Shown here piece after piece: positions 1 through 14,322 of a stretch of 14,322 nt of DNA. Made by a program: the position numbers and the translations under genes. How positions within the stretch are numbered: the stretch's first letter is position 1; the number at the start of each line of letters is the position of its first letter. The notes below the pieces were generated by a model. It worked only from the letters and a program-made list of their open reading frames with translations, was not told the origin of the DNA and ran no database searches. The DNA lies in assembly GCF_006345805.1 (NCBI RefSeq), contig NW_021825827.1, forward strand, positions 1-14,322. Direction: 5' to 3'. Source of the stretch: Octopus sinensis. Lineage: Eukaryota.

Positions 1-216
1 TTCCAGACCACTCAGCTGGCAAAAATAAAGTTGGTACCTGTAATTTCAAAGGGCCAACCTTGTCACACTTTGTGTCACGCTGAATTTCCCCGAGAACTAC
101 GTTAAGGGACATATGTCTGTGGAATGCTCAGCCACTCGCATGTTAATTTCCCGAGCAAGCTGTTCCATTGATCGTATCAGCTGTGACCCTCGTCATCATA
201 ACTAATAAAGTGCTCC
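1..216 (+). mobile_element. 3' part of a tRNA-derived SINE (family B here); the 5' part lies outside the window
   Basis: Aligns by eye (about 80%) to the reverse complement of 4538-4722 and 7287-7420. The copy at 7287-7534 carries pol III A/B boxes and a CORE-like motif. Confidence 0.8.
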
Positions 217-225
217 TTTTATAAT

Positions 226-256
<31 letters not shown>

Positions 257-259
257 AAC

Positions 260-573
260 ATTCAGATGAATATGGTACTTAAGTTGAGGGCACGCCAGAA
301 TTTAGTATGGTATTATCCAAACAATTTCAAGTAAGGTGATTAAAATCAAAATAAGTAACAAGGATATCCAAGAGGTAATGCAGTACAATCGCTTCATGCA
401 ACTCCATTTAATTGAACAATGCAATCATTACATCAATTTAAAATGCATAGCATGATTGCTCTGAAGATTGCTCTGCATTTTAAATTGATGTAATGATTGC
501 ATTGTTCAATTAAATGGAGTTGCATGAAACAATTGTACTGCATTACCTCTGGATATCCTTGTTGCTTATTTTG

Positions 574-576
<3 letters not shown>
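260..576. mobile_element. Short palindromic repetitive element (family E) flanked by (TA)n on both sides
   Basis: 260-447 recurs at 6594-6792. Internal inverted repeat 346-447 / 474-574. (TA)n at about 232-256 and 577-606. Confidence 0.7.
346..574. repeat. Inverted repeat, arms of about 101 bp, 26-nt spacer
   Basis: Arms 346-447 and 474-574 differ by 3 substitutions and 1 indel. 393-447 pairs perfectly over 55 bp. Confidence 0.95.
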
Positions 577-609
<33 letters not shown>

Positions 610-1290
610 TAATCAAAGGACATACTAGGTATGTCAACCTGCTTGAAATAACAGTCAAAACTCTTATTATTAAATCGGCAAAAATACACCGATGAAAACT
701 ACAGAAATCAAACAAAGGCAAAATCAGGTTAAGATAATCTACTAACACACATTTAAGTATTTGGACTCATGTGGATCGATTTCTGCATTGGTAAAGACCT
801 TAGCTTCTTCAGCACGTGTTACCATTATTAGAGACTCCCAACCCATCGCTTCGAAGTCTGTGCTGCAACTGAATTCGTTTCACGTCGAAATCATAACAGC
901 CACTGGGGTAAAATAATCTCGATACAATTTACGAGAAAAATAATTCACCAAAATTTAATTTACATTGTTACATTGGATAATAATAGAATTAATGACACCT
1001 TTGTAAATTAATTTTTGGTATATATATATATATATATCTATATATATATATACCAAAGGAAATGTTGATCTCTATATCCATCTAATCCAGAAATGGCGTT
1101 CTCAAGTAATCTATGTATGTATGATCTTTCGTTATTTTTCCCTCTATACCTGCGTGAATTATTTTTTAGTATACATTGTCCGGGAGTCTTTTCTTAGAGT
1201 AGAAGAAATAGCTAAGGTTTGTTGGCTGCTATTTCTAAAAGTTTGGTGCGTGGTAAAGTAAATTATTTTACTGAACCCTAATTATATAAC

Positions 1291-1326
<36 letters not shown>

Positions 1327-1359
1327 CATGAATATGGCATGATTTTACTTGATATTTAT

Positions 1360-1407
1360 TTTTACCATTTGTTTGTCTTCACCGTTTGTTGTTTTTTTCC
1401 ATTGCAG
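1360..1407 (+). promoter_or_regulatory. Polypyrimidine tract and 3' splice acceptor of the eMIC exon
   Basis: TTTACCATTTGTTTGTCTTCACCGTTTGTTGTTTTTTTCCATTGCAG with AG at 1406-1407. No other AG between 1259 and 1405. Protein similarity begins exactly here. Confidence 0.9.
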
Positions 1408-1582
1408 TGCACGGAAGAGACCAGTCCCGTACCACCGACCCACACCACCTACACCAAGTTCTCTGAGCAGCTTTTCTTACCGATCCTACAGCAGATCTCG
1501 GAGTCCATCTCGAGAGCTGAGTTGTAGTCGAAGTCGCAGCCGTAGTCACAGCCACAGCAGATGTTACAGTCGCGGCCGTTAG
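1408..1582 (+). CDS. Srrm234: Last coding exon of the eMIC-containing isoform of Srrm2/3/4 (serine/arginine repetitive matrix protein; second half of the eMIC/SRRM_C domain plus RS tail). Phase-2 start, stop TAG at 1580-1582
   Basis: Translation (S)ARKRPVPYHRPTPPTPSSLSSFSYRSYSRSRSPSRELSCSRSRSRSHSHSRCYSRGR*. The start matches the vertebrate SRRM3/SRRM4 motif SARKRPIPYYRP, followed by Ser-rich and RS dipeptide sequence as in SRRM4. Canonical acceptor precedes it. CpG- and GC-rich compared with the flanks. Confidence 0.88.
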
Positions 1583-1590
1583 AAGTAAGG
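1582..1590 (+). promoter_or_regulatory. Possible 5' splice donor (GAA|GTAAGG) 2 nt after the stop codon
   Basis: GTAAG at 1585-1589 fits the U2 donor consensus. Use is unproven. Confidence 0.4.
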
Positions 1591-1880
1591 GGGGGGAATG
1601 AAAAAGAGAGAGAGGGAGAGAGGAGAGAGATCGAAGCATACGCAAAAGACAAATGAAGAGGAGGAGGAGGAGGAGGAGGTAGTGAAGGGGTTAAGAGAGA
1701 AAGAGAAAGGAAGGATTAACGAGTGGGTTTGAGAGGAGCAGAGAGAGAGAGAAAGAGAGTGTGAGTGGAGAAATACAAGATTGGGACCAAATTATAAGTC
1801 GATGAGCGAGACCATGATATTTCACAAGAGAGAGAGAGAGAGAGTTAGTGGAAGAGGAAATGAAGATGTGTGAGTGTGTC
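1583..1880 (+). repeat. Purine-rich low-complexity tract: (GA)n, (GAG)n, G-run
   Basis: Direct reading. A second purine-rich block lies at about 2110-2275. Confidence 0.85.
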
Positions 1881-1884
1881 TACT

Positions 1885-2100
1885 TGTATATGTGCATGAG
1901 TGTGTATGTACATGTATGTGTGTGTGTGTATATATATGTATATATATATGTAAATGTATGTACATGTATATATATGTATATATATATGTAAATGTATGTA
2001 CATGTATGTGTGTGTGTATATATATGTATATATATATGTAAATGTATGTACATGTATATATGAATGTATGTATATTTATATGTATGTATGTATTTATAAG
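1885..2100. repeat. Compound (TA)/(TG)/(TATG) microsatellite with a higher-order unit
   Basis: GTAAATGTATGTACATGTAT occurs at 1950-1969, 1988-2007 and 2038-2057. Confidence 0.9.
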
Positions 2101-2151
2101 TATAGATGCTTACAAGTAGTGAAAGGGAAAAAGTGAGAGTGAGTAAAGGAG

Positions 2152-2204
2152 AATAAAAAACTGAGAAAAAAATGGATTTTAAGTGTGTGTGGTGTGTGTG
2201 TGTG
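2152..2204 (+). terminator. Candidate polyadenylation signal with GU-rich downstream element
   Basis: AATAAA at 2152-2157, followed about 25-45 nt later by GTGTGTGTGGTGTGTGTGTGTG. Plausible, but both motifs are common in this composition. Confidence 0.4.
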
Positions 2205-2673
2205 AAAGAGAGAAACAGAGAGAAGGAGTATGAGTGAGAGAGGAAGTACGAGTGATAGTATGAATGAGAGAAAGATATATATATATATATATATAGCAGA
2301 TAATTTAGATAATCTAAATGAAATATTCTTAACTAAGTTCTTAGTAATTGCTCCAGGATGATTACTAAATTTGCTAATGTACTTAAAGATTGGTCAACGG
2401 TTTATGATATTGGAAGTAAGAGTCACTGTGTAAATTAAGCGTAATATATGTAGTGTATGTGTGAGAAAGCAAGAATTTGGCAGCCAGACCCATGACATAA
2501 GCCAGTATGCTACAGATTCCACAGATTGTATAAAGAAGAGGGTGGGGCATTGTTGCATTGCGGGGATAAGTCTTCCGCCCTCGCTGAGTCCATCTGTCTG
2601 TTTGGTAGAGCAGAGCATGATCAGATTCTCTCGATATTCCAAACATTAAATGAATCTTATTGTCTTTGGCCCT

Positions 2674-2674
<1 letters not shown>

Positions 2675-2712
<38 letters not shown>

Positions 2713-2719
2713 CACACAC
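2675..2719. repeat. (CA)n microsatellite
   Basis: Direct reading. Confidence 0.95.
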
Positions 2720-2894
2720 CCTCTGCACTAAGTCATTCTAATTTCATATGATGTTATTAATTAATTAATTATACTTTCAACTACAAACCTGTCCATAACA
2801 ATAAATGATTATTATAATAATTACTACTACTATTAGAATATGAAGAATTATCATACTAGATAAATCAGATTATCCTTGATATTAACATTAGTAA

Positions 2895-3692
2895 AGTCAG
2901 CAAGCTGGCAGAATCGTTAGCACGCCGGCCAAAATGCTTAGTGGTATTTCGTCTGTCGTTACGTTCTGAGTTCAAATTCCGTCAAGGTCAACTTTGCCTT
3001 TCATCCTTTCGGGGTCGATAAATTAAGTACCAGTTACGCACTGGGGTCGATATAATCGACTTAATCCATTTGTCTGTCCTTGTTTGTCCTCTCAGTGTTT
3101 AGCCCCTTGTGGGTAGTAAAGAAATAAGTATTTCGTCTGCTGTTACGTTCTGAGTTCAAATTCCGCCGAGGTCGACTTTGCCTCTCATCCTTTTGGGATA
3201 GATAAATTAAGTACCAGTTATGCACTGGGGTTGATATAATCGACTTAATCCGTTTGTCAGTCCTTGTTTGTTCCCTCTATGTTTAGTCCCTTGTGGGCAA
3301 TAAAGAAATAAGAAACGTTAGCATGTCAGGTGAAATTTTTAGCAGTATTTCGTCTGTCTTTAAATTCTGAGTTCAAATTCCGCCGAGGTCGACTTTCATC
3401 CTTTCAGGGTCAATAATTTAAGTACCAGTTGCATGCTGGGGGACGATCTAATCAACTGCCCCCCCATCCCTTGTGCCTAGAGTAGAAAAGAATCATTAGC
3501 ACCCTGGGCAAAATGCTTCAGAGCTTTACTTCCATCATTACGTTCTGAGTTCAAATTCCACTGAGGTCAACTTTGCCTTTCATCCATTTGGGGTCGATAA
3601 AATAAGCACCAGTTATGCACTGGGATCGATGTAATCAACTTAATCCATTCCCAGGACTTGTTGGCTTTCTACCAAAATTTACAACTAATGTT
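2895..3692 (+). mobile_element. Head-to-tail array of four tRNA-derived SINE units (family A): about 2895-3128, 3128-3312, 3313-3490, 3490-3692
   Basis: Each unit carries TTCTGAGTTCAAATTCC (B-box-like) and GGTC(G/A)ACTTT...TCATCC...AAG(T/C)ACCAGTT. The first has an A-box-like TGGCAGAATCG. Further copies at 5661, 8616, 8812 and 10678. Confidence 0.9.
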
Positions 3693-3794
3693 AATAGCAG
3701 TAAACATTCTACTACTACTAATAATAATAATGATAACACCAACTTGAATGATAATAATAATAATAATATAGATGGGCTACAGCAAATATTCAGC

Positions 3795-3920
3795 TCAATA
3801 CCACAGATTTGCTTGTCAGTTGTTTGACCTTAACCAGCTGAGCATGTCCCTTGTTGGCTGATATGTGCATCTCTGATCATGAGCAGAAGTAGTGGGGGAT
3901 CATCATGTGTTGAGAGGAAC
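3795..3920 (+). mobile_element. Probable fragment of another interspersed repeat
   Basis: Resembles a common octopus repeat from memory. Single copy in this window, so it cannot be confirmed here. Confidence 0.35.
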
Positions 3921-4099
3921 AGATACTCCTTTTGAAGTACTCAATAGAAGTACTCAGTAGAGCAAGTGGCTTACCCAAAGGAATACTCTCTGGCATGTTC
4001 CAAGTTTATTCAATCTCAAATCCTAAGTTCAGCTTAAGCCAAAGTTAAGTACTAAAATAATAAAAAAAAAAGAATGAGATAACATAGGAGCTGCTATGT

Positions 4100-4310
4100 G
4101 GTCACAGGGTCTGCTATATATAGTAGTGAAGTCTCTCTCAAAGAGCTTTACATAATTAAGGGGTAGCGGAATCTAACACACAAGAAAATGCAGTATGGAG
4201 ACATAATATATACGTGAAATAAACTGTGGGAAGGTCATAGCTGGATTGCCTTTGATATTACGGTATGCTGCTCAGTCAGAGGTGACTTGATGTAACTGCA
4301 TTAATAACTA
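4100..4310 (+). mobile_element. Old, diverged interspersed repeat (family D)
   Basis: The GG(A/T)GGTCAT(A)RCT(G/A)GA..GCC.TT motif and its flanks are shared with 5505-5610 (+), 5300-5385 (-) and, more loosely, 7095-7280 (+). Confidence 0.5.
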
Positions 4311-4537
4311 AAAATGGGTGGGGGGGGGGATATTTTGTTGGTTTTTCTGCACCTGGGAATCAAATACCGAATTTCTACAGTCTGGAGAAATGGCAGATCT
4401 TGTTAAATTATGGTTGTGAACCTATTGCAGTCGTTGCTTTAACATTTCAACATATACATATGTACTGTCTGTCTGTTTGTCTATCTATCTTCATTTACTT
4501 AGCTCTATATTATGATTTTAGTAATCCATTAAATTAT

Positions 4538-4843
4538 GGCACTCCATTGGTTATGATGACGGAGGTTCCGGTCAATCCGAATCAACCGAACAGCCTGCTC
4601 GTGAAATTAACATGCAAGGGACTGAGCACTCCACAAACATGTGTACCCTTAACGTAGTCCTCAGAGAGATTCAATGTGACACAGAGTGTGACAAGGCTGG
4701 CCCCTTTGAAATACAAGTACAACAGAAACAGGAAGAAAGAGTGAGAGAAAGTTGTGGTGAAAGATTACAGCAGGGTTCACCACCACCTTCTGCCAGAGTC
4801 CCATGGAGTTTTAGGTGTTTTCGCTCAATAAGCACTCACAACG
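4538..4843 (-). mobile_element. SINE family B, 5'-truncated, with a different middle segment
   Basis: 4538-4722 is the reverse complement of 33-216 (about 80%). The tRNA head is missing. Confidence 0.8.
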
Positions 4844-5023
4844 TGAAACTTTAGGGAAACCTTTTCCTAGCTGATCTGTAAGATAGTGAAGGGCTGGTTG
4901 TAATTATTGGTTTTAAGTTCAAATACAACCAAAGTTAGATAAAAAATTTAAAAAAATAGTATGAGCTAACAAAGATGCCTTGATAGAGTCAGTGGACCTG
5001 CGAGAACTACCAACCGCATCTAG

Positions 5024-5282
5024 CTAGTGTGGCCTAGGGGTTAAGGTGTTGTACGCAGCATCATAAGAACATGGTTTCAATTTCCGGTCCAAGTAATACA
5101 TTAGCAAAACAACTGCAAGTTGCTCTGCAATCGCTGTGAGATCTGATGCATAACAATGTGCAGCTTTGCGGGTGATGTCAATTTGATAAACGGAGTAAGC
5201 TAATGGGTAGCATGAGCATTTGATAGCTATAAGCAAATCAACTGCAAGGGCTGTTTGGCAAGATATTACAGAACCACTGTTT
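5024..5282 (+). mobile_element. Degenerate tRNA-derived SINE (family C)
   Basis: A-box-like TGGCCTAGGGG (5030-5040) and B-box-like GGTTTCAATTTCC (5073-5085). The extent of the body is from memory of octopus repeats. Confidence 0.5.
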
Positions 5283-5320
5283 GTCAATTATGACATGAGA
5301 GTCCACCATATCTATCCTGC

Positions 5321-5448
5321 TGTGACCATCCAATTGGATTCTCCTTTCAGGTGAAGCATAGCCTGGACTGCAACACCTAATAATTTTCTTACACACATAC
5401 ACACACACACATCCTGGACTGCAACATTTAATAGGGTTTTTAAAACAC

Positions 5449-5479
<31 letters not shown>

Positions 5480-5566
5480 ACTGTGTGTGTGTTTAAAGAA
5501 TATCTATTAGATGTTGCAGTCAAGAATATGCTATACCTGAAAAGAAAATACTATAGGATGGTCATA
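5321..5566. repeat. Two family D fragments in inverted orientation around (CA)/(TA)/(TG) microsatellites
   Basis: 5321-5382 pairs with 5505-5566 (GACCATCC...TTTCAGGT...GACTGCAACA.CTAATA). CCTGGACTGCAACA is repeated directly at 5413-5426. Confidence 0.75.
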
Positions 5567-5660
5567 ACTAGAGTGCCCTTAATTCTACATAGGTGTGCTT
5601 GATGAGAGAGATAGATAGATAGATAGATAGATAGATGTGTATATATATATATAGATATAT

Positions 5661-5810
5661 AGGTGGCGAGCTGGCAGAAACGTTAGCATGTCGGGCGAAA
5701 TGCTTAGCGGTTTTTCGTCTGCCGTTACATTCCGAGTTTAAATTCCGCCGAGGTCGACTTTGCCTGTCATCCTTTCAGGGTCGATAAATTAGGTACCAAT
5801 TACACACTGG
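5661..5810 (+). mobile_element. SINE family A, 3'-truncated
   Basis: Full tRNA-like head GGCGAGCTGGCAGAAACGTTAGC...GAGTTTAAATTCC plus central domain. Inserted after (AGAT)n/(AT)n. Confidence 0.9.
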
Positions 5811-6246
5811 TCTGTTCAACTAGAAATGACCAAGGGCTAAATGGGCAACTTTGGAGAATCCTCCCTCAGTTGATCTGCAAATACAGCAAAACAATGGTTG
5901 CAATTTGCCAGGGACTTTGCGTTCCTTTGTTTACAACACCCTGAATTTTTACTACCACCCAGGTCAAATCAGGGAACAAAACCCGTGAAAGTATGAAATG
6001 TGAGACTCCTTCCAGGGATCACAGTCGAAAATTTTCATGGAAGACAGCAGTGTTACGACTGCTGATGAATTTAGCAGACAAATGACAAAATGGAGGTACG
6101 AGACACACCTTTCCACCTCAAGTCTAAAACCAAGTGTAGCTTGTAGCCAATAGATGATGATACTGATTAAACTAGTATCCATTCTTTAAGGGTTTTCTTT
6201 AGTAATCTCTTAATCTCTCAGCTCTTCTATATAATCCTCTACCTTG

Positions 6247-6247
<1 letters not shown>

Positions 6248-6300
<53 letters not shown>
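6248..6300. repeat. (TA)n(GA)n compound microsatellite
   Basis: Direct reading. Confidence 0.95.
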
Positions 6301-6302
<2 letters not shown>

Positions 6303-6593
6303 ATTATACTTGTATTTATTTTGCTTCCTAATTCATTCACACATCAATTCATCTGTATAATATTCTATTTTCCCTTTTGTATATAATCCGCTGATAATCT
6401 GTCCGTCTATTCATATATATATTTGTCCATTCATAAAACCACTAATGAATCTAATACATACACATGTGCTCCTCATCTGTCTGCATATATATATATATGT
6501 ACATAGATGTCTATGGAAGAATCTACCACCACAGCCCTCCCAGGAATAATAGGGAAAGAAGCTGGCTATATATATAAGTTCAGTAAAATTTAG

Positions 6594-6792
6594 ATTCAGA
6601 TGAATATGGTACTTAAGTTTGAAGGAACCAGAATTTAGTATGGCATTATCCATATAATTCAAAATAAGGTGATTATAATCAAAATAAGCAACAAGGATAT
6701 CCAGAGGTATTGCAGTACAATCGTTTCATGCGACTCCATTTAATTGAACAATGCAATCATTTCATTACATCAATTTAAAAATGCTGAGCAAT
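6594..6792 (+). mobile_element. Second copy of family E (left part only, no mirror arm)
   Basis: Colinear with 260-450, just under 90% identity by eye. Confidence 0.85.
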
Positions 6793-6811
6793 ATTTAGCT
6801 GCATAAAAATA

Positions 6812-7073
6812 TAGAATTTAGTCCTTTGAATTTAACTATCTATTCTACATAAGAACTCACCGGAAAGATTACTAAACCTTTTAGTGATCTAATTCTCTGA
6901 TAGATTTTGCCATATCTTCTCCCTGTGTGCTCCCAGTGCAAGAAGCAAAGCTCTGGCAAACTGACTTGTCCTTTGAGAGACACAGTGCTCCCTCTGATTC
7001 CATCTCAGTACATACACATGAATTAAGAGTGCAAGCTAAACCTTTAGCATTCATGGCCACACTACATTGTCAT
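6812..7073 (+). repeat. 262-bp segment duplicated at 10701-10963 (probable source copy)
   Basis: Identical except at six sites, all involving indels. Confidence 0.97.
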
Positions 7074-7094
7074 TTTAGGCAAAGTAGTCAGTCA

Positions 7095-7280
7095 ATCAGC
7101 TGGAAATAGTAGCCAAGTCAATCATTAAATTACAGTCTTGAAAAACGCAGGCCACATTTGAAAACGTAGGCCTTAGATGTACAAATACGTAAATAATTAA
7201 GATAGGAGCTCTTGCAAATGGAACACCTTTCATCAAATGTCTGTTCAACTAGAAATGACCACGGGCTAAATAACAACAGC
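7095..7280 (+). mobile_element. Family D repeat copy
   Basis: Tail 7240-7271 matches 5811-5842 at 31/32 nt. Loose similarity to 4100-4310. Confidence 0.45.
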
Positions 7281-7286
7281 CAACTA

Positions 7287-7534
7287 GCACTCCATCGTTG
7301 ATCCCCTCAATGTGCAAGTGGCTTGAGTACTCCACAGACATGTGTACCTTTAATGTAGTTCTCAGGGAGATTCAGTGTGACACGCAATGTGACAAGGCTG
7401 GCCCTTTGAAATACAGGTACACTGGAGCAACGTGAAATAAAGTGTCCTTGCTCAAAGGCATACTGTTCCACTGGAGTCGAACTCATGCCCTTACGTCTGT
7501 GTGCAAAATACTCTAACCACTGAGCCATGCACCT
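7287..7534 (-). mobile_element. SINE family B with tRNA head and CORE-like domain, internally deleted
   Basis: Minus strand: A box TGGCTCAGTGG (7517-7527), B box GAGTTCGACTCC (7473-7484), CORE-like CTTTGAGCAAGGACACT (7441-7457), then the body shared with 1-216. Confidence 0.88.
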
Positions 7535-8147
7535 TCAGACAACCTACACACATATAGACACATGATGCATATATGCTGTGTAATTTATATATAATTCCAA
7601 ATTATTTTGCAAAAGTTTTTGCGTTTTTGATCAAGAACCTAAAAACCAAAGAATTTTTTAAAAAATAACGATAATAATTGCATTATATTCGTTCCTTCAA
7701 ACGAATTGGTGACATCATCAAATAATTTTTTTTTCATATATTTTACTATTTTTTAATTTTTTTTTACAATTTATATTTTTGAATAAAATATTTCCTTTTT
7801 ATGTTTGATCTACTGGAAGAAAAAGATTTGCAAGTTTAATTTATAATTTAACAATTAAATAAATCATTCCCGCCCCCCTCCCCGCTCATATCTAATCTAC
7901 AGTACAGTTTGTGAGGTTATTATTATTATTATTTTATTTTTTTTTTTTCACTTTTAATGAAATATTGATCTGCAACTTTTTAAATTCTTTAATGCAATCC
8001 ATTTTATATTCTCATACATATGGCCAGACATTAGGAGACACACATACATGTACATATATATACATAACTTATGCTTTTGTGAGTACATATACATATTTAA
8101 CTGTATCTACAAACGCAAAAATAAGTGCACATTTGTATAAATGAATA

Positions 8148-8506
8148 CAGGAGTGGCTGTGTGGTAAAGTAGCTTGTTTACCAACCACATGGTTCTGGGT
8201 TCAGTCCCACTGCATGACACCTTGGGCAAGTGTCTTCTACTACAGCCTCGGGCCGACCAAAGCCTTGTGAGTGGATTTGGTAGACGGAAACTGAAAGAAG
8301 CCGGTCATATTATATGTATATATATATGTATGTGTGTTTGTGTGTCTGTGTTAGTCCCCCTAGCATTGCTTGACAACCGATGCTGGTGTGTTTATGTCCC
8401 CGTTACTTACAAAAAGAATAAGTCCCGGGGTTGAGTTGCTCAATTAAAGGCGGTGCTCCAGCATTGCCACAGTCAAATGACTGAAACAAGTAAAAGAGTA
8501 AAGAGT
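8148..8506 (+). mobile_element. tRNA-derived CORE-like SINE (family F) with internal microsatellite
   Basis: TGGCTGTGTGG, GGGTTCAGTCC, CCTTGGGCAAGTG. Colinear with 9776-10164 apart from a deletion of about 40 nt. Tail (GAGTAAAA)n. Confidence 0.92.
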
Positions 8507-8615
8507 ATACACATACATACGTATGTATGTATGTATAGAGCTAGGCTGATGCAAACAGGCAAAAGAGAGCTCAAAATATGAGTATATGTATATTCGTATT
8601 AATATTTAGCAGGAG

Positions 8616-8842
8616 TTGGCATGCCAGGCGAAATGCTTAGCGGTATTTTGTCTGTCTTTATGTTCTGAGTTCAAATGCTGCCAAGATCGACTTTGCCTCT
8701 TCATCCTGTCACGGTCGGTAAATTAAGTACCAGTTGTGTACTGAGGTCGATCTAATCGACTGACCCCCTCCCCCAAAATTTTGGGCCTTGTGCCTAGAGT
8801 AGAAAATAATATAAGGTGGCGAGATGACAGAAATGTTAGCAC
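8616..8842 (+). mobile_element. SINE family A unit (8616-8810) followed directly by the head of another unit (8812-8842) that runs into (CA)n
   Basis: Same motifs as 2895-3692. Confidence 0.88.
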
Positions 8843-9775
8843 ACACACACACACACACACAAACACATATATAGAATCACACTATGGATGACCAAATTAC
8901 AACACGTATATATCCCATTGTTTGTATTATAGTGCATTGTTGTACCATTCAAAACTTTTTTTCTTTACAAACAATTCACAATGCTTCAAGAGAACTACAA
9001 TACTCTCCTATATGTATATGTGTGTATACATATGCAAGTATGTACAATTTATGCACACAGGAGTAAGAGTATGCCTGCATTCACCAAAATAAGGTACACA
9101 TCTGTATTTATGCATTGTATATATATATATATATGCATTTGTTTGTATACATGAATGTATGTAGTCTTGCATACATATACACATACAAGTGTATACATAT
9201 ACGCACGTTATGAGTGAGGGTATGTTTATATTCACAAAAATGGTACATATTAATTTATGTATACACGTGTGTGTATAAATATATATATATATATAGTGAC
9301 ACCCTTCTTGTGTATGAGCAAAACCATTGCTAGAAAGAATTATTGATTACTATATTATTTAAAACTTAAAAGGTTTGGCAGTTTTACATATCCAGTTAGG
9401 GGATTTTGTTAATATAATTTGATAATCCACATTTCAAACTTACTTCTTTTTGAGATATATATATCTAAATAAAAAGGGGTTTGTATGATTGGGTATAGAG
9501 GGATATATATAATTCAAAGGAATTCCAACTCTGTTTTTTAATGTTTTACTTATATTCTTTATAATATTAATGTAGAATATAGAGTATATAGTATAAATAG
9601 TATAAATTGTAAAATGAAATGAAGTATTGATTGTCTTATTGAATAGATGAAATATTGGATATCAAATATTAAGAGACTAGTATACTTTCTTGCATTATAG
9701 CAGTCTTCAAGGTCCCAAGTTGTGACAGGAGTGTTTCAACACACACACATATATATATATGTATATGTGTGTAAT

Positions 9776-10164
9776 AGGCGCAGGAGTGGCTGTGTGGTAA
9801 GTAGCTTGCTAACCAACCACATGGTTCCAGGTTCAGTCCCACTGCGTGGCATCTTGGGCAAGTGTCTTCTGCTATAGCCCCGGGCCGACCAATGCCTTGT
9901 GAGTGGATTTGGTAGACGGAAACTGAAAGAAGCCTGTCGTATATATGTATATATATGTATGTGTCTGTGTTTGTCCCCCTAGCATTGCTTAACAACCGAT
10001 GGTGTGTTTACGTCCCCGTCACTTAGCGGTTCGGCAAAAGAGACCGATAGAATAAGTACTGGGCTTACAAAGAATAAGTCCCGGGGTTGAGTTGCTCGAC
10101 TAAAGGCGGTGCTCCAGCATGGCCGCAGTCAAATGACTGAAACAAGTAAATGAGTAAAGAGAGT
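9776..10164 (+). mobile_element. tRNA-derived CORE-like SINE (family F), near full length
   Basis: Same as 8148-8506, with the deleted segment retained. Confidence 0.93.
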
Positions 10165-10677
10165 GTGCATAAACATGTGTGTGCTTACACACACACACAC
10201 ACAATACAGTGAGGGTGGGTACAAGTATAAAATCATACCCAAGTACTAAGAGGTGTAGAAACATCTGTCAAATCTTTGTACATATTTTCCCATTCAATGA
10301 GCTTTAAACTAACCTCATCTTCAATATCTCCATCTTTCTTTTCTCTCTTCCCTTTACTCAAACAAAGCCATTTTCCATTGGGTATTTTGTTTTCAGTGGG
10401 TTTTTAGGGGCAGAAGTAGTTTTCTTTAGGAGAAGCACACAAGCAAGGATCAAATCTGGCTCCAACGTCTCAGTTTGGTATGGTGCCTGTTGTTGGATGT
10501 ACTTCGTAAAGCCAAGCCATCCACTCAACAGCTGTGCATTTTACATGGCCCCAGCACGACTGAAGGTGATTCGTGACTTGCAGGATTAAGGAATTCCCAT
10601 GACTGAAAGGTGTTGTGGCTTGAGGCAAAGGAATAATATAGAGAGAAGAACAGACTATAGTTAATATTTATAGAAGC

Positions 10678-11158
10678 TAAGGTGGTGATTGGGCAGAACT
10701 TAGAATTTAGTCCTTTGAATTTAACTATCTATTCTACATAAGAACTCACCGGACCAGATTACTAAACCTTTTAGTGATCTAATTCTCTGATAGATTTTGC
10801 CATCTTCTCCCTGTGTGCTCCAGTGCAAGAAGCAAAGCTCTGGCAAACTGACTTGTCCTTTGAGAGGACACAGTGCTCCCTCTGATTCCATCTCAGTACT
10901 ACACATGAATTTTTAAGAGTGCAAGCTAAACCTTTAGCATTCATGGCCACACTACATTGTCATGGCATGGTGGGGAAAATGCTAAACAGCATTTTATCTG
11001 TTTTTACATTCTGAGATCAAATTCTACTAAGGTCGACTGACTTTCATCCTTTTGGGGGTCAATAAAATAAGTACCAGTTGCATAATGGGGTTACTGTAAT
11101 CGACTAGACCTCTCCTCTGTACTTGCTGGCCTTGTGCCAAAATTTAGAACCAATTATT
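10678..11158 (+). mobile_element. SINE family A interrupted in its head by the 263-bp duplicated segment
   Basis: TAAGGTGGTGATTGGGCAGAACT (10678-10700) resumes as GGCATGGTGGGGAAAATGCT at 10964. Central domain and tail follow. Confidence 0.8.
10701..10963 (+). repeat. Second copy of 6812-7073
   Basis: Direct sequence identity. Confidence 0.97.
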
Positions 11159-11708
11159 GTAAAGGCTTTTGATTTTTAGTAAGGTCTCGAGAAGTTGTAG
11201 TATGAAGGGGGAAATATTTTTATCGCTAATATTTGTAATAAAGACGATAACGATTTCTATATTGACCACAAGGTACCCCCTCCACACAAAATATGATTTT
11301 TGTTTTGTTATTTAAAAACTGGCGGACAGAACATGGTGAGCTGGGTGTAAGTAGATATTTGGAAGAATTATGATACTGACAATGGTGAAGGTAGGTTTAT
11401 TGAATAAAAATGGAATAACACTGAATTCCAGTTTGTTCACACAAATTCTAGCTATGTTTATGATTACTGATAACAGACAATAAGGATATAGAAACATGGT
11501 CAGGATTATGAAGTCTATAGCAGGAATATAATAAATAGTAGTAGTAAACAAATAATATACAAATAATATATGATAATATACAAATACAATAAGATTCTAC
11601 CAATATTTATTTCTTTACAGGAGGGTTACACAATATTCATCAGAAAAAAAAAATTTTGCAACTGCTTTGCCTAGTCTTAGCTTCATCTACCTATTTATTT
11701 ATACTGTG

Positions 11709-11787
11709 AATATATATATGTATATATATATTTATATATATATGTATGTATTTATATATATATATGTATATACATATATATATATAT
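11709..11787. repeat. Imperfect (TA)n/(TATG)n microsatellite
   Basis: Direct reading. Similar tracts at about 1020-1052, 1292-1322, 9117-9135, 9279-9295 and 14063-14108. Confidence 0.9.
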
Positions 11788-12340
11788 GGAGAGAATGAGG
11801 AGAAATTTTTAAAATATCATGGCAGAAAAAAAAAAGAAATGAGAAAATGATATTAAATTAAATTAAATTAAATTAATAAATTAAAAAAAATAATATAACA
11901 ATAAACAAATAAAATTCATGTCAAATTTTTTCAATTAAAAAAATATTTATATTCATATATATTATGTATATATGATATATATATACATATACATAATATA
12001 CACTCACATATACATACATACATTATTTAAATTATTTCCAATTCTCATTGTAGCCCTCCCCTACAATCGAGAGATCAAAATGATTGTAACTTGTTTTATT
12101 TTTCAAGTAAATAAAATTCAAAATAAGCTCAATTGTAAAATTATTCCAGGTGTTGCTCTTTATTTATTATTCGTTGTTGTTGCTGTTGTTATTGCATTCT
12201 TCACTTTGTATATATTTTAATCTTATGTACAGGTATTTACAAATGAAAATATACCTGACAAAATTTCTTGCAAACCTTGTGCAAGATTTATCAACTCAAC
12301 AGAAGTTTCACAACAAATATTGCGTGCTTGAGTGCATGTA

Positions 12341-12911
12341 TTGGGTTGTCCGGAAAATTTGTGTTCGTTCCGATTTATAGTAGCTTACATTTCGACTTAT
12401 TTTAGAACATGGTTGAGTCCATAAAATAGGATTTCTCTACACCTCCATTAGAGCACAGTTTAAGCTATCTTTTCGTGGAAGAAGGTTTTGTTCCTATAAC
12501 CTGTGTTAATTCTGTAACCCTTTAAAATGGAAGATAAGACAGTTCATTTTCGGCACTTGATGCTTTGGGAACCAGACAAAACTTGCTGCAGCTCAGCTGG
12601 GATGTGTTACCCCACCCTCCATATTCACCAGATATTGCTCCTTCGGATTTCCACTTATTCAGGTCTCTGCAGAATAGTCTTAATGGTAAAAATTTCAATT
12701 CCTTGGATGACGTAAAAAGATACCATGATGAATTCTTTGCCATGAAACCACCTCAATTCTGGGAAGAGGGTATTTTCAAGTTAAAGGAAAGATGGAGACA
12801 CATTGTGCAACAAAATGGTCTCATATTTGGTTGATTAAAAATGTAATGGCAAGTATTTATTGACCTTTTTCTTTCCTTTAAAAATCGGCACAAACTTTCT
12901 GGACAACCCAA
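12341..12911 (+). mobile_element. Internally deleted mariner (Tc1/mariner) DNA transposon, 571 bp
   Basis: TA at 12339-12340 and 12912-12913. Left TIR TTGGGTTGTCCGGAAAATTTGTG and right TIR (reverse complement) TTGGGTTGTCCAGAAAGTTTGTG. Contains transposase fragments. Confidence 0.95.
12527..12838 (+). pseudogene. Mariner transposase remnant: first 15 codons joined out of frame to the C-terminal part
   Basis: MEDKTVHFRHLMLWE (12527-12571), then TRQNLLQLSWDVLPHPPYSPDIAPSDFHLFRSLQNSLNGK... containing the YSPD(L/I)APSD motif with the third catalytic Asp. A likely 1-nt insertion at about 12820 shifts the final SYLVD* (TAA at 12836-12838). Confidence 0.93.
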
Positions 12912-12913
12912 TA

Positions 12914-13160
12914 CTTTTATCAAAGCAGCAAAATTAAGACAAAAATTGTTTCACAGAGTTTCACGTTCCTGTTTGTTGGACAGTTGTTATGAAAACTCAC
13001 AACAAAAAACTTCATCACAACTGTCTGACAAACGGAAGTGAAATTCTGAATAACAGTTTTTGTGATAATTTTGCAGCTTTTATAAAAGCATATAACTCTA
13101 CCTTTGGTATTCGAGTACTATCTTTTCCAACTTATTTTACACTTATGTACTAACCTGTTT
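12914..13160. mobile_element. Short element with inverted arms (12914-12993 / 13011-13088), Penelope-like pseudo-LTR remnant
   Basis: The inverted repeat is seen directly. The right arm contains a hammerhead-like motif. The Penelope assignment is inference. Confidence 0.6.
13019..13058 (+). ncRNA. Decayed minimal type-I hammerhead ribozyme motif
   Basis: AACTGT CTGACAA ACGGAAGT GAA ATTCTGAAT A ACAGTT. Stem I is 6 bp, the core has G8 changed to A, stem II is damaged, stem III is self-complementary, triplet AUA. Confidence 0.6.
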
Positions 13161-13179
13161 GTGTATATAAATACATACA

Positions 13180-13378
13180 TAGGGGAGAGTTCACGAAAAA
13201 ATCAACAAAAGACGAAGACAGGTGGTGTACAAAACAAACAGATGTATTAGTATAACGTTCAGGAATTGAAATAGCCTTTTACGTTTCGAGCCTAAGCTCT
13301 TCTACAGAAAGGGACACAGAAGAAAACAAGGAGAGAAGAAAAAAATGTGTGTAGTGGCTACCGATCTATCATGGCGAC
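13180..13378 (-). mobile_element. Short Penelope-like element remnant
   Basis: Contains the hammerhead-like motif at 13276-13311. Boundaries are approximate, set by flanking microsatellite-like sequence. Confidence 0.5.
13276..13311 (-). ncRNA. Variant minimal hammerhead ribozyme motif
   Basis: Minus strand CTTT CTGTAGA A GAGC TTAG GCTC GAA ACGT A AAAG. All three stems are intact and the triplet is GUA, but the core reads CUGUAGA with an extra A. Confidence 0.6.
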
Positions 13379-13493
13379 ATGCATGTGTGTGTGTAATAAT
13401 AATAATAAGGATTACTATGAAGTAGCATAGCATTACCTTTAAATCCTTGTTATACATATTCCTCTGATATATGAAGTATACAGAGAAGAAAAA

Positions 13494-13619
13494 AATTGTA
13501 GGTGTAGACGATCTTTATTTCATAATCTAGGTTGGTAAAGATCCAATATAAATTTTACATTTTATATTGGATCTGTACCAACCTGGATTATGAATTAAAA
13601 ATCGTCTACACCTACAATT
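13494..13619. repeat. Inverted repeat, 59-bp arms, 8-nt loop
   Basis: 13494-13552 / 13561-13619, 55/59 matching. Confidence 0.95.
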
Positions 13620-13705
13620 ATATCAGCATGTGTATATATAAAAAAATTTTTCAGAGTGAGATAAAAATCTAAGACTGTGGAAGATTTTAGAACATTTATA
13701 AGTAG

Positions 13706-13754
13706 GTGTTACAGCTGTTTCCGGGATATTTTTTTATATCCCTTTATCAGAGAC
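13706..13754 (-). ncRNA. Decayed minimal type-I hammerhead motif
   Basis: Minus strand GTCT CTGATAA A GGGATAT AAAAAA ATATCCC G GAA ACAGCTGT A ACAC. Confidence 0.6.
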
Positions 13755-13803
13755 GGTGTGAGAAAATGATTAAGCAATACTTGCTTAACCATTTTCTCAC
13801 ATC

Positions 13804-13851
13804 ATCTCCAATGAAAGGATATATACAATATCCTGGAAACAGCTGTAAGGC
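13804..13851 (+). ncRNA. Decayed minimal type-I hammerhead motif
   Basis: ATCT CCAATGA A AGGATAT ATACA ATATCCT G GAA ACAGCTGT A AGGC. Confidence 0.55.
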
Positions 13852-14068
13852 CTATTTATAAATGTTCTAAAATCTTTCACAGTCTTGGATTTTTATCTTA
13901 GTCTGAAAAAATATTATATATACACATGCTGATATATGACCTGTGTTGGACTCCTCATTCATATAATCACTGAACCTGTAGCTTAGCTATAGTCTGTCCA
14001 TAGCACTTACTCAGCATTACCTGACACCTTTGGGTCTTATTGACACGAGTAGCCCTCAAACTATATAC

Positions 14069-14108
<40 letters not shown>

Positions 14109-14322
14109 CTTTAGGTAAATATATTCAATAAGAATATTATGTACTGAATTTCTAGAGTGCTCAATTGTAGGAAAATATTAATACTATTAAAGTATTTATA
14201 TATTTAATATGAGCGATATATACATATATTTTTTTAATAATGTCATTTTAATATAAGGAAATTAATATCCAAACTCATCTTAAAGATAAACCCGTGTGAA
14301 AATACTTATTGTATTAAAAATA

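Follow-up and report, generated by a model that had tools for sequence, protein, structure and literature searches.

Neuronal microexons are activated across bilaterians by a known master regulator, the eMIC domain. According to PMC8797185, which cites Torres-Mendez et al. 2019, this Arg/Ser-type domain makes contact with U2AF1/2 and SF1. Vertebrates carry the eMIC in dedicated, transcriptionally neural genes, whereas outside the vertebrates it is expressed through post-transcriptional 3′-end processing of a single Srrm234 gene (PMC8797185); the statement of the initial annotation of our locus, that invertebrates make the domain from one Srrm2/3/4 gene by way of an alternative 3′ end, agrees with this account. 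In the Drosophila gene the eMIC is divided between a first exon, whose donor is shared, and a distal terminal exon; the proximal exon is a terminal or poison exon, and Elav and Fne bind UUUNUUU and favour the distal choice (PMC8797185).

The window analysed here is a whole stretch of 14,322 nucleotides from Octopus sinensis (assembly GCF_006345805.1, contig NW_021825827.1, positions 1–14,322, forward strand). We propose, with a probability of about 0.85, that a splicing-factor gene of the Srrm2/3/4 (Srrm234/SRRM4) type has its distal, terminal exon here, with positions 1408–1582 as the coding part of that exon. The exon is an ordinary instance of a known family, and neither a new kind nor a new mechanism. 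Compared by description, Drosophila melanogaster Srrm234 (CG7971; PMC8797185, Torres-Mendez et al. 2019) is like the proposed gene of the window in having a C-terminal Arg/Ser-type domain split over two exons, and a like role in neural microexon activation would be expected; the fly gene also shows two poly(A) sites, control by Elav/Fne and a proximal exon of the poison or terminal kind, whereas the window holds the distal exon only.

Other systems could be compared at the level of residues. Arthropod SRRM2/SRRM4-like proteins (Centruroides XP_023229463.1, Hyalella XP_047740008.1, Nasonia and Diploptera L9F63_012809) have SARKRP[VI]PY[HR]RP[TS]P in common with the window, together with PSSLSS and a [WF]SYRS[WY]S.SRSP-type tail, the position and phase of the intron, and a similar distance to the stop. 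They differ in that the tail diverges past about 34 residues, chelicerates have R for the H of the window, and the phylum is presumably different. In vertebrate SRRM4 and SRRM3 (for example SRRM4 of Oreochromis aureus) the domain has the same end, ...ARRITSARKRPIPY[YF]RPSPSS..., followed by a Ser-rich and a Ser/Arg-rich tail, but with I and Y/F as opposed to the V and H of the window, and their first half ends in SPS[FH][ML]EARRIT as opposed to SPSFLD[KR]RRIT in arthropods. The tick Ixodes pacificus has a distal terminal exon that reads (S)ARKRPVPY as in the window, within the layout that would be expected for the gene of the window, although the tick genome is GC-rich, R replaces H, and the tick locus holds more than this one exon.

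The exon and its family

The sequence across the acceptor is ...tttatttttaccatttgtttgtcttcaccgtttgttgtttttttccattgcag/TGCACGGAAGAGACCAGTCCCGTACCACCGACCC (a slash within nucleotides marks a splice junction), with the exon starting at position 1408 on the + strand. It lies inside a 77-aa ORF (1349–1582), MIFIFTICLSSPFVVFFHC-SARKRPVPYHRPTPPTPSSLSSFSYRSYSRSRSPSRELSCSRSRSRSHSHSRCYSRGR and a stop, whose first 19 residues (1349–1405) are the translated pyrimidine tract. Residue 20 of the ORF is a Ser whose codon, 1406–1408, spans AG/T, which puts the intron before 1408 in phase 2, with the AG of this codon having to come from the exon upstream. The acceptor ends in ...ccattgcag, with 31 pyrimidines in the 40 nt upstream and no AG in the last 20 nt. 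Counting both strands, the window has 1615 AG dinucleotides, and just 8 of them reach this standard (31 or more pyrimidines in 40 nt, no AG within 20 nt). From the Ser onwards the exon encodes (S)ARKRPVPYHRP, TPPTPSSLSS and a Ser/Arg tail (Table 1); the 46 residues after the core motif include 18 Ser and 10 Arg, and a TAG follows in the same exon. The coding part is an island of 55% GC between flanks of 31.5% GC, and the motif is single-copy in the six-frame translation of the window. The strong acceptor, the motif, the RS tail and the 77-aa ORF with 19 intronic residues had all been described in the initial annotation and are confirmed exactly.

Table 1. Coordinates of features in the window and of the corresponding exons and splice junctions in relatives.
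Feature	Locus	Position	Strand	Remarks
Polypyrimidine tract of 3′ splice site	Window	1355–1405 (51 nt)	+	78% C/T; ends in AG 1406–1407
Three UUUNUUU motifs	Window	1355, 1368, 1392	+	Inside polypyrimidine tract
Candidate branch point TCTTCAC	Window	1376–1382	+	Putative branch A 1381, 25 nt before AG; fits loose yUnAy consensus
3′ splice site AG	Window	1406–1407	+	Phase-2 intron, Ser codon AG/T
C-terminal core of eMIC / SRRM_C, (S)ARKRPVPYHRP	Window	1408–1441	+	Pfam SRRM_C and 11-sequence alignment
Conserved extension TPPTPSSLSS	Window	1442–1471	+	Past end of Pfam model; same in Diploptera
36-aa Ser/Arg-rich C-terminal tail FSYRSYSRSRSPSRELSCSRSRSRSHSHSRCYSRGR	Window	1472–1579	+	Translated ORF
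Stop codon TAG, CDS end	Window	1580–1582	+	Relatives also stop in corresponding exon
Presumed 3′ UTR start, 85% purine tract	Window	1583–1790	+	Most purine-rich 200 nt of window
Near-perfect palindrome	Window	371–452 / 469–550		82-nt arms, 96% complementary, 16-nt loop; in intron upstream of exon
tRNA-derived SINE-like element, 7 copies	Window	2910–3127, 3094–3311, 3311–3440, 3489–3706, 5676–5810, 8609–8794, 10955–11138		65–100% identity to reference copy
Dispersed repeats, 50–145 nt	Window	8167–8526 vs 9799–10182; 6812–7073 vs 10701–10963; 34–172 vs 4581–4720 vs 7324–7412		83–100% identity
Mariner transposase relic	Window	12538–12831	+	98-aa stop-free frame; C-terminal ~89 residues of Mos1 transposase and SETMAR
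Inverted repeat	Window	13477–13636		76-nt arms, 84%, 8-nt gap
Inverted repeat	Window	13631–13926		100-nt arms, 88%, 96-nt gap
Acceptor	Cockroach Diploptera			tttttcag/TGCTCGCAAACGT; T GCT CGC AAA CGT after cag
Donor	Nasonia vitripennis WELF01000022.1	~11047		CGA ATA ACT AG/GTGAGT
Acceptor	Nasonia vitripennis WELF01000022.1	~48254		ttttcag/TGCCAGAAAAAGG (T GCC AGA AAA AGG)
First-half exon	Ixodes pacificus OZ285906.1	12835–13005		
Donor	Ixodes pacificus OZ285906.1			atc acc ag/gtaaaa (...ACC AG/GTAAAA)
Proximal non-eMIC terminal exon	Ixodes pacificus OZ285906.1	14908–15042		Annotated
Distal SARKRP exon	Ixodes pacificus OZ285906.1	20257–20475		
Acceptor	Ixodes pacificus OZ285906.1			gagccag/CGCGCGCAAGCGA (C GCG CGC AAG CGA CCG GTG CCC TAC)

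A donor-like GTAAGG at 1587, just past the stop, is unable to extend the coding sequence, and two antisense ORFs over the exon (1379–1645 and 1449–1652) were taken as by-products of Ser/Arg codon periodicity. Apart from the three sites in the pyrimidine tract, TTTNTTT does not occur on the + strand within the first 5.9 kb of the window; as these three cannot be told apart from the tract itself, they give only a lead for Elav/Fne-type control.

The SRRM_C profile (PF15230), a search with which had been proposed in the initial annotation, is the sole family match of the exon; the score of the exon alone is 16.5–18.2 bits (E 0.004–0.013), under the gathering threshold of 27. The match covers profile positions 56–67 of 67. 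Second halves of true genes scored alone reach 16.8 (Nasonia), 13.9 (cockroach) and 18.1 bits (fish-type) at the same profile positions, and the complete Nasonia protein scores 54.5 bits; because true second halves give 13.9–18.1 bits, the sub-threshold score is at the level of a half-domain and is no sign of weak homology. The core SARKRPVPYHRP at 1406–1441 fits SARKRP[IV]PY.RP, and every column that is invariant across an 11-sequence alignment (A, R, K, R, P, P, Y, R, P) is present. A PDB sequence search with the exon peptide gave no meaningful match, and the region is of low complexity and expected to be disordered.

Relatives were collected with a profile search that was exhaustive over 1.84 billion representatives at a cut-off of E≤0.001 and gave 20 matches, specifically SRRM_C proteins. 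Eleven of these are spliced proteins reading ...SPSIPRR.GSPSFLD[KR]RRIT/SARKRP[VI]PY.RP[TS]P or, in the vertebrate type, ...SPSFMEARRIT/SARKRPIPYYRPSP. Another eight are stand-alone ORFs that start in a translated polypyrimidine tract like the 77-aa ORF, the junk part ending in F/Y/L codons, and in six further proteins translation continues past the donor (RRITR...). The names given by the sources are SRRM2 or SRRM4-like for Hyalella azteca, Centruroides, Nasonia and Oreochromis, while the relatives from Stegodyphus, Copidosoma, Caerostris, Nephila, Ixodes and Eretmocerus are unnamed or 'hypothetical'. In many arthropod assemblies the exon is called as a free-standing small 'hypothetical protein' that begins in the translated polypyrimidine tract, a repeated error of annotation by which the eMIC isoform is concealed.

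Word-indexed protein searches returned few relatives, among them a 'hypothetical protein, partial' of Diploptera punctata (L9F63_012809) that begins ARKRPIPYHRPTPPTPSSLSS and is identical to the window exon at 20 of 21 residues, ungapped, with one V/I change. The scorpion protein (Centruroides sculpturatus XP_023229463.1) is identical at 28 of the first 34 residues (SSLSSWSYRSWSTSRSPS vs SSLSSFSYRSYSRSRSPS), and the start of the 36-aa tail resembles scorpion WSYRSWSTSRSPS. Every named invertebrate relative is an arthropod, the nearest being chelicerates and the cockroach; no mollusc was among the matches listed, either from word-indexed searches with the exon peptide and two alignments or from the profile search. 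A protein with this exact C-terminus was not found in the protein collections, where isoforms differing only in their last ~60 residues share one cluster representative; because end-only isoforms collapse in this way, the missing protein is weak evidence and does not show the exon to be unannotated. Exact-match collections have no entry for the 77-aa ORF or for ten other ORFs of the window. We found no relevant report in the literature on the eMIC in octopus or other cephalopods.

Conservation runs past the end of SRRM_C. The next 20-odd residues, RP[TS]P..[TS]PSSLSS-[FWY]SYRS[YW]S.SRSP, form a block common to the window exon, the cockroach, chelicerates and, in part, vertebrate SRRM4-type proteins; within it PSSLSS is also found in the scorpion and in two vertebrate-type proteins. 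It is possible, though we hold it doubtful, that this block is an unrecognised functional extension of the eMIC, for example a docking or phosphorylation module.

Two claims of the initial annotation are not supported as they stand. It treated I-to-V and Y-to-H as deviations from the vertebrate motif, and yet among 26 sequences the first position has V 12 times and I 14 times, and at the second H is the commonest state with 13, against 7 for R, 3 for Y, 2 for N and 1 for K. Both are ordinary invertebrate states, and the 'H-to-Y revertant' it suggested for an assay is not a reversion because H is common in invertebrates. It also considered the RS tail short; from the Ser to the stop the exon encodes 58 residues, which is inside the range of 33–117 in relatives and equal to the scorpion protein.

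Intron position and coding constraint

The phase-2 split of the Ser codon (AG/T or AG/C) is common to the window and to the cockroach, Nasonia and Ixodes loci, with acceptor sides of cag/T GCA, cag/T GCT, cag/T GCC and cag/C GCG, respectively. On the other side of the intron, the first half of the arthropod eMIC ends in ...RSPSIPRRRGSPSFLDKRRIT, and the upstream boundary predicted in the initial annotation (...RRIT plus AG) was found at this phase-2 intron in relatives. Together with the SRRM_C match and the spliced relatives, the conserved intron bears out its reading of the locus as an eMIC-domain exon of an Srrm2/3/4-type gene. The 143-aa 'SRRM4-like' model of Nasonia holds little beyond the domain and looks partial.

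Constraint at the protein level is seen against the cockroach. Over 21 codons, 6 are identical, 14 are synonymous (including Ser AGT vs TCC) and one carries the V/I change, such that 18 of 63 nucleotides differ with a single conservative replacement. This pattern of mostly synonymous change marks the exon as translated and as subject to strong purifying selection.

Neither the first half of the eMIC nor an Arg/Ser-rich exon was found upstream, in positions 1–1407, or elsewhere in the six frames of the window; the upstream 1407 nt consist of repeats and microsatellites. The intron that splits the eMIC is ~37 kb in Nasonia (~11047 to ~48254) and ~7.3 kb in Ixodes, and since the homologous intron of relatives is thus 7–37 kb long, the absence of the first half within 1407 nt carries no weight. 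The initial annotation would have counted a lack of upstream eMIC sequence against the exon, and this does not apply to the window for the same reason.

Surrounding sequence and alternative readings

The window is ~35% GC with dense TA/TG microsatellites, and the region 3′ of the exon is mostly repeat-derived. The purine tract that follows the stop is made of GA and GAG repeats, including (GAG)7, and has no counterpart behind the cockroach exon; it may be no more than a microsatellite, or else act as a purine-rich enhancer in the definition of the terminal exon. After it comes a TG/TA microsatellite of 240 nt (1866–2104), and the first AATAAA sites past the exon, as candidate poly(A) signals, are at 2152, 2800 and 3299. 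The SINE-like element has the core GAGTTCAAATTCCGCCGAGGTCGACTTT...CATCCTTTCGGGGTCGATAAATTAAGTACCAGTT, and two full copies stand in tandem (2944–3312, 184-nt period, 89%). ARAGORN and Rfam do not call the copies, and Rfam and tRNA scans of the window were empty; the element may be akin to an abundant octopus SINE, and together with the GC content and the TA/TG microsatellites it gives the window some likeness to octopus genomes. Strings from the element brought up nothing relevant in the literature searched. The mariner relic aligns to residues 257–344 of 345 of the Mos1 transposase (PDB 3hos, E 2.5e-22), with no Pfam match and no intact N-terminal part seen. The upstream palindrome looks like a MITE or foldback element and has related copies 6.3 kb downstream (6646–6765 and 6628–6765), and small foldback elements probably account for the two inverted repeats near the end of the window. 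Nothing else in the 14.3 kb looked like a coding frame, and Pfam searches of six other ORFs were empty.

Given such surroundings, the locus could be an eMIC exon in decay, or a stray piece of one left by duplication, that is no longer spliced into any mRNA. It is isolated amid microsatellites, SINE-like copies and the mariner relic, and no matching protein is on record. We judge this very improbable, as 58 codons run uninterrupted to a regular stop, the ancestral intron position still has an undamaged acceptor and pyrimidine tract, the exon length matches that of relatives, and 20 of 21 residues are kept vs the cockroach despite the nucleotide differences described above. A retrocopy would have RRIT directly upstream and not an intron end, and the exon belongs to no repeat family within the window. 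It might also be suspected that a low-complexity Ser/Arg/Pro ORF resembles the eMIC motif by chance, with the query being short and compositionally biased and the Pfam E-value only 0.004–0.013, but this is effectively refuted by the cockroach exon, which begins at the same splice site and aligns over 21 residues with no gap and a single conservative change. Furthermore, the loose pattern RKRP.PY occurred 0 times in 300 shuffles, and a profile built from the exon was specific in retrieving SRRM_C proteins.

A different question is what kind of gene the exon ends. It may be genuine and yet belong to a dedicated SRRM3/4-like gene, as a last exon that is used constitutively, with neural restriction being transcriptional as in vertebrates. 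No competing proximal terminal exon or poly(A) site is visible in the window, which would fit such a gene, as would the several arthropod models that are short 'SRRM4-like' proteins. Those models are probably partial, 3′-end control of a single Srrm234 gene is the non-vertebrate rule (PMC8797185), and the tick locus has both a proximal and a distal terminal exon, so that we consider a dedicated gene unlikely and favour the distal exon of an Srrm234-type gene.

Predicted use of the distal exon

The tick shows how such a gene may be laid out. At the Ixodes locus the annotated product joins RRIT to the proximal exon (cag/G GCT CCA GAC..., R-APDAKIRYSSSRSRS...*), and the SARKRP exon lies 5.2 kb past this proximal terminal exon. 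The three-exon layout matches the Drosophila scheme in PMC8797185, meaning that the proximal/distal arrangement of terminal exons known from holometabolous insects is also present in a tick.

By homology with these genes, an upstream exon outside the window would end in ...SPSFL(D/E)(K/R)RRIT plus AG, and splicing of its donor to the acceptor before 1408 would complete the Ser codon and join the first half of the eMIC to the core, the TPPTPSSLSS extension, the 36-aa tail and the stop. In an Srrm234-type gene these exons would in turn follow an N-terminal body of the Cwf21/SRRM2 type. A complete eMIC would then come only from transcripts that reach and use the window exon, and use of its acceptor would be the deciding step. 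By homology to the proteins of fly and mammal, the whole domain would contact the early spliceosome factors SF1 and U2AF1/2 and lead to the inclusion of very short neuronal exons. If the window exon is chosen over a proximal last exon or poly(A) site in neurons, as the fly suggests, this choice may confine the activity to them.

The exact acceptor and stop codon define a junction that can be counted in brain vs non-neural RNA-seq, and they make the exon a clean target for knockout or cloning. If the host is a cephalopod, as presumed, the exon would provide a handle on whether an eMIC-dependent microexon programme operates in a large-brained mollusc by way of an alternative 3′ end.
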